Notes: generated by a model from the letters alone, not told the origin. DNA of 64,000 nucleotides from Octopus bimaculoides (GCF_001194135.2 NC_068993.1:20961593-21025592), one strand, 5' to 3'. Positions 1,590 through 35,171 are shown, numbered from the stretch's first letter. Program-made: numbers and translations.

Positions 1590-1768
1590 TTACTTTATTG
1601 AATTTGAAATGTTCTTGCTTGATCCAGTTATATATTTATCAATACCTAAATCAAGTGCTCCAAAGCCTTTTTCGCAATGTTCTACAAATGGACCGAGTAC
1701 GAAATGGAGTTTCTTTTTATCCAGGGCAGCATTTCTTTTAGCAGTTGCATGTCGTATCATTTTTCTAT
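1590..1768 (-). CDS. Gene A coding exon 2: end of propeptide, KR site and mature peptide of a secreted prepropeptide
   Basis: Acceptor tttctcattttatAG at 1770-1769; in phase 1 reads (Y)RKMIRHATAKR-NAALDKKKLHFVLGPFVEHCEKGFGALDLGIDKYITGSSKNISNSIK*; GTAAGT donor 12 nt after the stop; homologous to 35008-35171. Confidence 0.85.
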
Positions 1769-1940
1769 CTATAAAATGAGAAACGAAAAGGGTCACACAT
1801 TAGAAAAAAACAAACAAAAACTTCTCAAAAAGGTTAGTAACATCCTGATAAAGGTTATCACATTTTTTTACATTTCAAAACTGTATTAAGTAATTCTCGT
1901 AGTCTTTCTAATATATATATCTAGACCCCCCCCCCACACA

Positions 1941-2817
1941 CAGGGTACGATGAATAAACTACCGACTAAATTACGCAAGAATGAAAATAACACTGACTTC
2001 TGATTTTAACAGATATTTATGTTACCAAAATAACATAAATATCTCGAAATAGTAAACAATAAATTTATTCAATAAGATCGTCATTGGCTTCGATCACGGC
2101 CTCCACACGACTTCGGAATCTCCTGCGACTCTTCTGGACGCTCTCCGCGTTTAAGTTGGTAAATGCAGCCATAATTCTTGCCTTCAGTTCATCTTTAGTG
2201 CTACAAGGAGTTTTGTTGGTCTCTCGCTCAACCGCGCCCCACACATAATAATCAAGGGGATTGCAGCCTGGAGAATTAGCTGGCCAGATGTTACGGGTGA
2301 TGTGGTCGCAGACATTGTCTGCCAGCCATGACTGTGTTCTGCTTGTGTGACATGATGCAGAGTCCTGTTGCCAGACATAGAGCCTTCCAATAGCCACCCT
2401 CTTGACCTAGGGTGGTACTACCTCCTCTAGACACTTGGTGTAGGCCTCCGTGTTGAGTCTGAGGTCATGTGGGAAGATGAATGGAGGCATAACATTGCCA
2501 TCACTAGTGATCATTCCAAACACCATGACGTTGACTTGATGCTTAATTTTTATAACTCTCAGTACATGTCTTCAGATTGCACTATCTTCGGATTGACATC
2601 CAAACACTCTGAAATGTTCGTATTGGAGCTTCGGGCGCGAATGCCATGCAGCACAGCATGTCGCTTCCAAATTTTTGGCAGAGTGAATTGCCTCATGGTG
2701 CTGTTTCTCTCATAGATGGTGCCCAACTGATCCTACTATATTGTGTAATCGACAAAATCCAAAACAATGCACATGCGCGAAAAAAAGAAATGGTAACAAT
2801 TTACCCGTCGCACCTTG
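1941..2817 (-). mobile_element. Tc1/mariner (DD37D/maT-like) element, internally deleted, in gene A intron
   Basis: WQQDSA...WPANSPGCNPLDYYVWG transposase motifs; degenerate ~20-bp TIRs; right-hand TA runs into a (TA)n tract at 2818-2888. Confidence 0.8.
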
Positions 2818-3284
2818 TATATATATATATATATATATATATATATATATATATATATATATATATATATATATATATATATATATATTCTATCCTTTAC
2901 CTGGACAAGCATAGAGTGCACAATATGAAATGGGGCCTTTGAAGGATATATAAAATACACAGTTTAACTGTTCATATGGAGATTCTGAATGCTATCATAG
3001 TTTAATAATCCATGGTGTAGCCTGCGTATGAACTGAATGTATTAGTGAATTTAGAAACCTCTCTTGAGTGAATCAAATATTTGTATACGCAGGTCTGAGG
3101 AAGTTTTTATTAAGAAAAAAAAATGGACAGTTGGACAAGGATGCTGGTTCCTTATCTTTACGCATCCGATATTATCCAAGAAGAAGGTTACTGCTTTAAG
3201 GCCAATACTGTTTGGCATCAATGTCGTCGCAAGCATTGCTGTCACTAAAGCAATGTCATTGCGTTACTCAGTCTGTCGGTAACG

Positions 3285-4242
3285 CTTTCATGTGATTGGA
3301 GAAGAAGAGGAAGAAAGAAAAAAGAGGAGAGAAAAAGAGGGAGGGAGAAAAAGAGGGAGAGAGAAAAAGAGGGAGGGAGAAGCGTTTATCATGTGAGGTA
3401 GAGGGAATGTAATTGTAACGCTTTCACGTGATTAGCTGAAGGGAAAGGGAGGACAAAGAAAAATGTGAGAGAAAAAGAGGATAAGACGAAGAATGAGAAA
3501 GAAAGAGGAAGAAAGAAAAAAGAGGGAGAGAGAAGCGTCCATGACGTGAGATAGGGGAAACTTAATATTTATTACGTGGTTTAAAAAGTTAGTTGAAGGT
3601 AGAGGAGGAGAGTTAGAAATACAATTTTAGCAAAGGTGTGATGTTCTGATGGTGAGGTTAAAGAAAAGCAGGGAGAGAGGAGGGAGAGAGAGAGAGAGAG
3701 AGAGAGAGAGAGAGAGAGAGAGAGAGAGAGAGAGAGAGAGAGAGAGAGGAAGGAGAAAGGAGAGAAGATGACGATGGTGGTGGTGGTAGTGATGGTAATG
3801 GTGATGGACAGTGAAAAGTGTATTTTTAAAATTGAACTAAGGTTTTTTTAATATCATCTATCACTTAACGCATGCGCATAAGTGCAACTCCGTGAAATAT
3901 TCACGCTTATTTACGCACCAGATACAATTTAACTAAAGGTTGTATCATATGTACGGGATATATTTTTTGCTTATGAGGGAAAATGGAAAAATAAGAGTGA
4001 ATATTTATTTTGTGAGTGCTGTGTCTATAGAATTGTGCATAAAGTATATTTATAAAGTGCATTAAGTAATCATCGTATTCCAATTACCTTTACTTTTCAA
4101 TGATTAGCAGATGAGCGACTGTCTTTCCATACACATACAACACAGGCTAGGCTTTCAGGTTTTTTGGATAAAGTTTCCAGAAATAGCCCGATAGGTTTAC
4201 CATTAATTCCATGAAATATTCACGGGTCCGTTAGTCACTAAT
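3285..4242 (+). mobile_element. Probable non-autonomous Helitron-like repeat with internal GA-rich and (GA)n tracts
   Basis: 3' end cacgggtccgttagtcaCTAAT resembles a Helitron CTRR terminus; family assignment from recall of octopus repeats. Confidence 0.45.
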
Positions 4243-4654
4243 ACTATACATGCAAATAGAGTAAACATCTTCGACATGCTTACAAATGCAAGTAAGGCCA
4301 ACATCTGTATTTTGTATTTGTTATGTCTCAAGCTACTGCTATCTAGCACCTTCGGATGATCGCTACTCAACCGCTGCACAACTGCTACTCGACTGCTACT
4401 CAACACATCTACCACGGCCAGACTACCTCTATTTATATGTCTTGGGAGATCCTACTTCTTTACCTGGAGGCGTCGATACAACAGTATTATAACACCCCTC
4501 CACTACGCAAAAATATGCGTACATATTCATGGATGAAATGTATACATTCTTACACACACGCGCACGTCATACAGAAGTACATACATATATACATACAGAT
4601 ATACATACATACCTACATTCTCATAGATGCTCTTCTGCATACATTTATACTTAC

Positions 4655-4796
4655 ACAAAACGGAAGTTTTGGTATCCTTGCTCATACGGGGCGCTTCCAT
4701 ACGTTCTTCATTCAGCGGTACAGCTTCAGTAATATACACCGAAAGAGAGTAGATGAATATAAAAGTTAACAAACTGAAGGTGTTCAAGACGTCCAT
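4655..4796 (-). CDS. Gene A coding exon 1: signal peptide and propeptide (exon starts at 4813 with 17 nt of 5'UTR)
   Basis: Acceptor ttttcttttaagtcctttacAG (4815-4814); ATG 4796; MDVLNTFSLLTFIFIYSLSVYITEA-VPLNEERMEAPRMSKDTKTSVL; donor GTAAGT 4654-4649, phase 1; 94% identical to 24801-24942. Confidence 0.88.
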
Positions 4797-32921: not shown

Positions 32922-33030
32922 TACAACTTATCCCTTTATCTTGTGTCGTACTGTATATTCTATATGCTTTGTCGAATGATACATTAAGGAGCTTCCTTTT
33001 ATGAGAACTACCGGATTACTGGAATCCATA

Positions 33031-33688
33031 TTTCTTTTATCTGTTACTTGTTCCAGTCATTAAACTGCGGTCAAGGAACACTGCATTGAAGAATTTTTAG
33101 CCGAATTAACTGATTCCGGGACTTATTTTCTTAGAACCTGGTACTTGTTTTATTAGTTCTTTTGTCAAACCGTTAAGTTACGGGAACATAAACACACCAA
33201 CACCGGTTGTCAAGTGGTGATGGAAGTGCGTGTGTGTGTGTGTGTGTGTGTGTATACACACACACACACTCACACACACACACTCACACACACACACTCA
33301 CACACACACACTCACACACACACACTCACACACACACACTCACACACACACACTCACNNNNNNNNNNNNNNNNNNNNNNNNNNNNNNNNNNNNNNNNNNN
33401 NNNNNNNNNNNNNNNNNNNNNNNNNNNNNNNNNNNNNNNNNNNNNNNNNNNNNNNNNNNNNNNNNNNNNNACACACGCACACACACACACACACACACAC
33501 ACACACACACACACACACACATATAACGGGCTTCTTTCAGGTTTCTATCTACGAAATCCACTCACAAGATTTTGGTTGGCTCAAGGCTATAGTGGAAGAC
33601 ATCTGACCAAGCTTCCACGCTATGGGACCGAATCTGGAACCATGTGATTCAGAAGCAAACTTTTTACCACACTGCCACGTCTACGACT
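33031..33688 (-). mobile_element. SINE family A with expanded CA/CT microsatellite and gap
   Basis: Head, body and tail similarity to other copies. Confidence 0.8.
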
Positions 33689-34059
33689 ATTATATATGTG
33701 TGTGTTTATATATATATATATATCAAAAGGATGTGTTATAATACTATTCAACAGCCATACCAACAATCCAATAATACTATTCCACACATGCAAAAACAGC
33801 CATACCAACAATCCAACATACTTCCATCATCAGCTTCCCCACGGATAACATTATGGTTTCGACACCTGGGCAGTACTATTCAATCTGGTGATGTCAATAG
33901 CACAAAAATAAGTGTTATGTGGGAAAAAACAAACAAAATAAACCAAAACTTTCAAACACATTTACCCTATGTACAACCGTATCGGTAAATATTTTCAACA
34001 AGTAAATTACAACCAACTAAATAAGTAAGTAAACTGCGACAAATTTATTAAGTCAAGGG

Positions 34060-34230
34060 AAAAATTTAGTCGTCTCTAATTGTCACTGTGGGTGCTGAAT
34101 AACACCTATATTCCAAGAAATAAGAGTTAAAAACCTTTAATGCAGCGTTAAGGCTTTTAACTCTTATTGCAATATAGGTACTATTCAGCACCCTCGGTCC
34201 CAATTAGCGATGATTAGATGTTTCCTTTAT
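34060..34230. repeat. Short palindrome / MITE core
   Basis: gggtgctgaata...aagagttaaaaacctt / aaggcttttaactcttatt...tattcagcaccc centred near 34143. Confidence 0.7.
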
Positions 34231-35007
34231 CGTCTAGCTATTTACATTAATTTTAGTATATACTAGACCAGTTAGGTCACCAATAGTTCAAGCTACCCCA
34301 AAAAACAGCGTATCTCGGGAATTCGTGATCTGATTTATGCGAAACTTCTTTTATCTCGTTTGTATTCATATGAGCATCCTATTTATGATGTCTTCTGCTT
34401 TTGTTTCGGTAAATATTTCGTGAAGGACACTTTCGTAACTCGGTGTAAAATAATTTTTTCCACAGGTTTTTTCGAGGGAATTCAACGTATCTCACCTCGA
34501 AACCCACCGCAAGCCACTTTTTTCCGGAAAAGAAAGGAGTAGAGGAGGTGGGAACCACGGAGTTTCCTGGGAATCTTCCTGGGAAGTTTCCTGGGAATCT
34601 TCCAAACTAAAGTCCCCTTATCGAAATTTATGGAATCATCGTTTGCACTTACGAATATTCAAAGTCCCTTCAACATATACTTCTTGCACATTTCTTGCGG
34701 TATTTGTTGCACTGTTGCCTTTTTTATGCACATAAAGCATGAAGTGTCTAATGTGCACTTCTGTGACCTCCATTTTCATGAAGGGATATCAAAGCAACAA
34801 ATTATTATTTGTCTGTCTGTAAGCTAGAATTTATCTAACTGAAGCTTTCCTTGCTCTGTGATATTTATGCACCCGTATAAACATCTTGTTTAAACGTGTT
34901 AGAGCATGTTTCAACAAGTACGGTCTTAAAAACGACATTACATGATTTATATATATACATATGTGCCACATTCTAAATGAAGTACAAATATTCTTTTCAT
35001 TTTATAG

Positions 35008-35171
35008 GTAGAAAACTAATTCAACGTGCATTGGGTAAGAGAAATGCTGCAAGCGATAATCAGGGACTCCATTTTGTAATTGGTCCAATTAGCCTGTGCG
35101 ACAAAAAATTGAAAAACTCTGATGTGAAACTTCCAAAATCAGCCCAAAAAACCAATAGTTTCCGTGGTTAA
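35008..35171 (+). CDS. Gene B coding exon 2: end of propeptide, GKR site and mature peptide
   Basis: Acceptor ttcttttcattttatAG (35006-35007); phase 1 gives (S)RKLIQRALGKR-NAASDNQGLHFVIGPISLCDKKLKNSDVKLPKSAQKTNSFRG*; homologous to 1590-1768. Confidence 0.85.

Follow-up and report, generated by a model that had tools for sequence, protein, structure and literature searches.

We analyzed a 64,000-nucleotide (nt) stretch of the Octopus bimaculoides genome (GCF_001194135.2, NC_068993.1:20961593-21025592), referred to here as the window and numbered from its first letter. Two spliced genes, gene A on the minus strand and gene B on the plus strand, diverge head-to-head within it, with coding sequences lying between positions 1590 and 35171. 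They had been proposed from the sequence alone (hereafter the original prediction) as a hidden pair encoding secreted prepropeptides of an unrecognized family. All coordinates of that proposal were reproduced for both genes, including the GT/AG phase-1 introns, the 17-nt leaders, and the 142-nt coding exons, and the translations matched the proposed proteins of 106 amino acids (aa) and 101 aa exactly. Gene B is the expressed copy, and gene A is its counterpart in a whole-gene inverted duplication.

Exon 1 of gene A occupies 4655..4813 on the minus strand, with an AG acceptor at 4815-4814 and a GT donor at 4654-4653. Its leader (4813..4797) is followed by 142 nt of coding sequence (4796..4655) that begins with the ATG at 4796-4794 and codes for the predicted signal peptide and most of a conserved basic segment. 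The intron (1769..4654, minus strand, 2,886 nt, phase 1, GTAAGT...TTTTATAG) is rich in microsatellites and free of assembly gaps. The coding part of exon 2 (1590..1768, minus strand) ends with a TAA stop codon at 1592-1590, specifies RK, the KR site, and a variable C-terminal peptide, and completes the 106-aa translation. The region from 1590 to 4813, comprising the coding sequence and its intron, is gap-free in the assembly. Farther upstream, homology identified 12131..12269 (minus strand) as the counterpart of the 3' end of the gene B 5' noncoding exon. The donor is kept there (ATAG/GTAAATGAG, with GT at 12130-12129), and no transcript of this segment was seen. One assembly gap (12275-12374) abuts its 5' side, and another (5726-5837) lies inside the gene A 5' intron. 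In both genes, an A is present at position -3 of the ATG, and the leader carries an in-frame TAA 15 nt 5' of the ATG, indicating that this ATG is the first possible start codon whichever 5' exon is used. Open reading frames (ORFs) antisense to exon 1 of each gene (4356-4769, plus strand, and 24600-25151, minus strand) were dismissed as microsatellite translations.

Exon 1 of gene B (24784..24942, plus strand) follows an AG acceptor at 24782-24783 and consists of a leader (24784..24800) and 142 nt of coding sequence (24801..24942), with the ATG starting at 24801 and the donor reading GTGAGT. The coding intron (24943..35007, plus strand, 10,065 nt, phase 1) holds an assembly gap (33358-33470) and a 2-kb repeat. 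Exon 2 (35008..35395, plus strand) contains the TAA stop codon at 35169-35171, completing the 101-aa translation, and a 3' untranslated region that extends to at least 35395; a 10-nt gap at 35410 lies beyond the part traced so far. A 5' noncoding exon of 855 nt (19521..20375, plus strand) was identified from an RNA contig of run X20, with a pyrimidine tract and AG on its 5' side and GTAAAT on its 3' side. A further assembly gap (20853-21018) falls in the 5' intron. The acceptor-like sequence ahead of 19521 implies that additional gene B 5' exons exist, and a search of the window for exons upstream of 19521 found none. The 17 nt described by the original prediction as the untranslated region form only the start of exon 1; gene B has further 5' noncoding exons.

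Splicing of gene B was established from RNA contigs of two runs from separate studies, X20 (2015) and X25 (2022). Splice junctions were read from the parts of the contigs that overhang individually aligned exons. Contigs of both runs contain gene B exon 1 at 100% identity and run on from it into AGAAAACTAATTCAACG..., which is gene B exon 2; seen from exon 2, the contigs of both runs bear ...GACTTCCATTTTGA, the end of exon 1, before position 35008. The junction 24942/35008 was therefore found exactly as predicted. A 1,115-nt X20 contig is collinear with 19521-20375, 24784-24942, and 35008-35108. Because RNA contigs bridge both 20375/24784 and 24942/35008, the order, strand, and frame of gene B are correct despite the two assembly gaps. 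In the X20 isoform, the 855-nt exon and the 17 nt of exon 1 make up an 872-nt leader with 20 upstream ATGs. In X25, a different upstream exon, not present in the window, is joined to 24784. Two short X20 contigs link 19520/19521 to two differing upstream sequences, neither of which is in the window. The three unplaced upstream sequences, two from X20 and one from X25, may be alternative first exons located in gaps or outside the window, or they may be branches of the assembly graph that pass through repeats.

Among the listed O. bimaculoides RNA runs, only X20 and X25 hold gene B sequence. No gene B words were found in the other listed O. bimaculoides RNA contig sets (12 in one listing), no gene B reads in 6% samples of the 2026 runs X24 and X27, and no gene B contigs in two other species from the study that produced X25. 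Gene A reads were sought in three RNA runs from 2026, each sampled at 6%. Exon 1 of gene A matched neither contigs of X20 and X25 nor sampled reads of X24 and X26; exon 2 was absent from every indexed RNA run and from the sampled reads of X24 and X27. The predicted gene A junction 4655/1768 thus found no RNA support in the runs searched, including the two that express gene B. Gene A is intact, and it is either silent or transcribed in a tissue or stage outside the sampling. High-copy repeats resembling short interspersed nuclear elements (SINEs) lie directly upstream of gene A exon 1 (4892-4990) and directly after its stop codon (1537-1583). RNA reads of X24 and X27 pile up on 1540-1587 and then continue into unrelated sequence.

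Collinear blocks of similarity bear out the proposed divergent, head-to-head paralogue pair. Besides the 5' noncoding exon, exon 1, and exon 2, the duplicated units take in the 3' flank and several stretches of intron. Three of the blocks contain exons: the end and donor of the 5' exon (A 12269-12074, B 20238-20432), exon 1 with its flanks (A 4902-4538, B 24695-25050), and exon 2 (A 1782-1686, B 34994-35090). Between the two copies, 134 of the 142 coding nucleotides of exon 1 are identical (94%), whereas identity in the flanks is 81% and 74% (Fisher p = 0.001). Exon 2 is 73% identical across its first 82 nt and cannot be aligned thereafter. By blastn and tblastn, each coding exon occurs just twice in the window, once in each gene. 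Exon word depth in four genomic runs was about 7-33, a single- or two-copy level, compared with 10^3-10^5 for the adjoining SINE-like repeats, and at 80% likeness the genomic runs yielded A-type and B-type contigs only. Genomic run X14, from one of two other organisms examined (organisms B and C), contains both A-type and B-type exon 2, which indicates that the duplication predates the split of these species.

The two proteins share a three-part layout. Residues 1-25 form a hydrophobic N-terminal helix ending in T-E-A/V-P. The hydrophobic run at residues 6-22 has a mean Kyte-Doolittle value of 1.7-1.85, and T at -3 and A at -1 fit crude criteria for signal peptide cleavage. A single-sequence AlphaFold2 model placed a helix at residues 3-25 (predicted local distance difference test score [pLDDT], 87-96) and left the rest disordered; with a mean pLDDT of 63, the model is uninformative beyond the helix. 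Hydropathy and the modeled helix thus agree with the signal-peptide-like N-terminus of the original prediction, and residues 1-25 are a putative cleavable signal peptide. The next 34 residues are conserved and strongly basic (VPLNEERMEAPRM(S/G)KDTKTS.L.RK.I....KR), with a net charge of +4 to +5, an isoelectric point (pI) of 10.4-10.9, and two invariant dibasic sites, RK49-50 and KR58-59. The C-terminal peptide that follows has 38-50 residues, one Cys, and an invariant core, L-x-F-V-x-G-P-x(3-4)-C. Outside this core, its residues, net charge, and end vary fast. The single cysteine is present in every sequence, and no multicysteine framework occurs.

Orthologues were rebuilt from lists of contig differences. 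These gave full-length A-type sequences from organisms B and C and B-type exon 2 from organism B only; neither organism gave a separately resolved B-type exon 1. Gene A exon 1 has diverged by 2-4% from its orthologues, with 3 differences in 142 nt for organism B and 6 for organism C. Against organism B, the flanks differ at 19 of 201 nt (about 9.5%), a significantly higher proportion than the 3 of 142 in exon 1 (Fisher p = 0.006), and exon 2 has diverged by about 11-12% between species. Ratios of nonsynonymous to synonymous substitution rates (dN/dS, Nei-Gojobori) followed the same division. For the comparisons of A with its orthologues in organisms B and C, dN/dS was about 0.27 across codons 1-59, which cover the predicted signal peptide and the basic segment, and about 1.4 in the C-terminal core; for gene B and its orthologue in organism B, the C-terminal core gave 0.83. 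The A cores of organisms B and C are about 4 substitutions apart, and each is about 12 from that of O. bimaculoides, 10 of them nonsynonymous. Most of the protein change therefore occurred on one branch, either that of O. bimaculoides or the stem shared by organisms B and C.

The ends of the proteins are less stable. The gene A orthologues retain the exon 2 ORF up to ..LGIDK, and deletions of 2 nt and 4 nt near codon 94 then create new tails; in the gene B orthologue, K95 is replaced by a stop codon, which deletes the ...SFRG end and an internal KK. Across the four full-length sequences, the C-terminal peptide has net charges of +2, +4, -1, and -5, a drift that argues against a conserved cationic antimicrobial peptide. 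Fourteen residues are invariant in the five sequences compared (A, B, two A orthologues, and exon 2 of one B orthologue): R49, K50, I52, A55, K58, R59, N60, L68, F70, V71, G73, P74, C79, and D87. The KR followed by N that the original prediction placed between its two segments accordingly holds in all five. Its designation of the C-terminal part as the mature peptide fared less well, since that part evolves in a nearly neutral fashion, whereas the segment labeled as propeptide is the conserved one. A sequence motif ending in PRM-G-K is found only in B; A and its two orthologues have PRM-S-K or PRM-S-N.

Database searches showed that gene B was not hidden. Its product is already catalogued as UniProt A0A0L8FXX0_OCTBM, an O. 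bimaculoides "Uncharacterized protein" identical over 101 of 101 residues, and the entry carries no name, domain, or family. The exact sequence of protein A is absent from about 15 billion collected proteins. Pfam searches of the proteins gave no match. A phmmer search of 1.84 billion representative proteins with B returned B itself and one spurious tandem-repeat protein only, and a profile built from the five sequences recovered only B. Protein P0002 (891 aa, E = 4e-13) was rejected, as its tandem repeat unit with "SICDVKASNSDVRM" mimics residues 75-90 of B. A contig look-up for the exact B protein gave no match. Full-text literature searches for the accession and the peptide strings found nothing, and the general literature offered analogies only. 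The statement that the proteins belong to no recognized family is thus upheld by the Pfam, phmmer, profile, and full-text searches. The wider attribution to a cephalopod family was overstated: the genes were seen in three closely related organisms and in none more distant.

On balance, and with moderate confidence, we interpret genes A and B as a lineage-restricted, two-member family of secretory precursors of about 100 aa, seen in O. bimaculoides and two close relatives. A whole-gene inverted duplication produced the two copies before the species split. In this scheme, each precursor would enter the endoplasmic reticulum cotranslationally and lose its signal peptide, a subtilisin-like proprotein convertase would cleave at KR and possibly also at RK, and the resulting fragments would be secreted. 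Translation, secretion, cleavage, and activity of the A and B products are what we infer from the sequences. Conservation favors the N-terminal segment over the C-terminal peptide as the putative active fragment.

Several observations weigh against this interpretation. The A product is known from DNA and the B product from DNA and mRNA. Gene A has no RNA support in the runs searched, and the appearance of gene B in just two of the listed RNA runs means that its expression is narrow or low. The 872-nt leader of the X20 isoform, with its 20 upstream ATGs, is poorly suited to translation. The signal peptide assignment was built on crude criteria. The C-terminal region is approximately neutral, its ends have been altered by frameshifts in the A orthologues and by a premature stop in the B orthologue, and so short an open frame could survive by chance. 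The orthologues themselves are reconstructions from difference lists and not direct reads, and all substitution counts are small, so that the evolutionary patterns are indications and not proofs.

The division between a conserved front and a drifting end also suits a rather unlikely alternative, in which the active product is the conserved segment immediately after the signal peptide and the C-terminal part is a dispensable precursor-associated peptide. Many neuropeptide precursors carry their active peptide in this position. The 34-residue segment differs at no more than one residue between A and the orthologues in organisms B and C and lies within the region with a dN/dS of about 0.27, RK and KR are invariant, and the C-terminal peptide drifts in charge from +4 to -5 and has unconserved ends. 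It is even conceivable that in B the residues VPLNEERMEAPRM followed by G-K yield a C-terminally amidated ...PRM-amide peptide. However, the amidation Gly occurs in B only, its place being taken by Ser in A and its two orthologues, cleavage would be needed at a single K, and the supposedly dispensable part retains the invariant LxFVxGP...C core. Classical neuropeptide genes are, moreover, usually conserved well past one genus, and the phmmer and profile searches found no relatives here.

The main rival to a secretory precursor, which we regard as quite unlikely, is that the pair is a young orphan ORF without protein function. Gene B would then be a low-level, partly repeat-derived noncoding transcript, gene A a silent duplicate, and the prepropeptide appearance fortuitous. 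The long leader exon rich in upstream ATGs, the variable 5' exons, the very narrow or low expression, the neutral exon 2 with its shifting stops, and the lack of homologues in the phmmer and profile searches would all be expected of such a transcript. It is less easily reconciled with the conservation of exon 1, which significantly exceeds that of the flanks in comparisons of species and of paralogues alike. Against it, too, the recovered sequences, full length for A, B, and the two A orthologues and limited to exon 2 for the B orthologue, keep the ORF and its splice phase, the context of the ATG, a hydrophobic N-terminus, and the dibasic sites.

Improbable by comparison is a small type II membrane protein, in which residues 1-25 would act as an uncleaved signal anchor with the basic segment beside the membrane. 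The best 19-residue hydropathy window (1.54-1.67) is near the usual threshold for transmembrane segments, the AlphaFold2 helix spans 23 residues, and no positive charge precedes the helix, and a basic segment follows it. Yet the small residues T (-3) and A (-1) are conserved, and the orthologues have Asp at the position of Tyr21, which cuts the hydrophobic stretch to 15 residues, so that a cleaved signal fits better than a membrane anchor. The case that both exons are part of a dispersed transposon or repeat family, which the original prediction had itself raised, would fit the SINEs and other repeats that flank them directly (4892-4990 and 1537-1583) and the mariner fragment in the gene B 5' intron, but it has next to no probability left and is refuted by exon copy number, both exons being at single- or two-copy depth in four DNA runs, versus 10^4-10^5 for neighboring SINEs, with only A- and B-type contigs at 80% likeness and no third copy in the window.

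A more ambitious version of the secretory-precursor interpretation is possible but doubtful. Here the pair would found an undescribed, octopus-restricted family of secreted signaling or defense peptides that combines a hyper-conserved signal/basic cassette with a diversifying single-Cys peptide, with B acting in one narrow tissue and A in a tissue or stage yet to be sampled. Elsewhere, a conserved cassette joined to a diversifying peptide typifies the peptides of venom, reproduction, or species recognition. If the products are truly secreted peptides, they would represent a small genus-level innovation, adding to the lineage-restricted secreted molecules of octopuses, with conceivable roles in saliva or venom, skin or sucker chemistry, reproduction, or neuroendocrine signaling, and they would provide a compact example of a conserved signal/pro cassette joined to a fast-changing peptide. 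Cephalopod genomes hold many lineage-restricted genes, and this pair is one uncharacterized orphan case among them. Gene A is absent from the protein collections searched, and the 5' structure of gene B is more complex than its coding exons imply. A corrected annotation and a check of tissue expression would be worthwhile; the pair opens no major question.

Other elements were noted in the window. Two copies of the 2-kb repeat, one in the gene A 5' intron (9846-11857, minus strand) and one in the gene B coding intron (30156-32112, plus strand), are 78% identical; the copy in gene B contains a 247-aa ORF (31125-31868) with no Pfam match. This repeat is probably a transposable element and lies outside the gene duplication blocks. 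A 128-aa ORF at 23051-23437 (minus strand) matched the Pfam domain HTH_48, the helix-turn-helix of Mos1/mariner transposases (E = 2.6e-15), and is a mariner fragment within the gene B 5' intron. Between the two genes, a 120-aa Arg/Ala-rich ORF (17996-18358, plus strand) showed a sub-threshold similarity to Pfam STPR repeats (E = 4e-5, 24.3 bits versus a cut-off of 27). At 40026-42137 (plus strand), ORFs of 127-172 aa share the motif ..ILWDFPIQTD....RPDLVVVDK.. and gave one weak, sub-threshold Pfam match; they look like decayed copies of retroelement-type ORFs.

Three known systems invite comparison with the two octopus genes. Molluscan small cardioactive peptide (SCP) precursors carry ...FPRM-amide peptides directly after the signal peptide. 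Protein B resembles them in that the segment after its predicted signal peptide ends in ...APRM-G-K and is followed by a longer, less conserved C-terminal peptide, but in A and its two orthologues Ser stands where B has the amide-donor Gly, and the basic site is a single K. Membership among SCP precursors was rejected, given that the Gly is not conserved and that a HMMER search recovered no SCP precursor. The myticalins (PMC5577615), linear cationic antimicrobial peptide precursors of molluscs, resemble the octopus proteins in small size, lineage restriction, and fast evolution, as well as in secretion, a signal peptide, and dibasic processing, which are predicted features of the octopus proteins. 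The octopus spacer, however, is basic (pI about 10.5) and not anionic, and across orthologues the variable peptide spans net charges from +4 to -5. With a mature charge of varying sign and a basic pro-region, the pair was rejected as a cationic linear antimicrobial precursor.

Cone-snail conopeptide superfamilies combine a conserved signal/pro region with a variable mature peptide. The octopus pair differs from them in having one cysteine in place of a multidisulfide framework and two gene copies in place of dozens, and phmmer and profile searches found no sequence similarity, so the likeness is one of evolutionary pattern. In both systems, the exon encoding the signal/pro region is far more conserved than its neutral flanks, and the C-terminal exon, on the other side of an intron, diverges at a neutral or higher rate; a basic cleavage site, here a predicted one, precedes the variable peptide.

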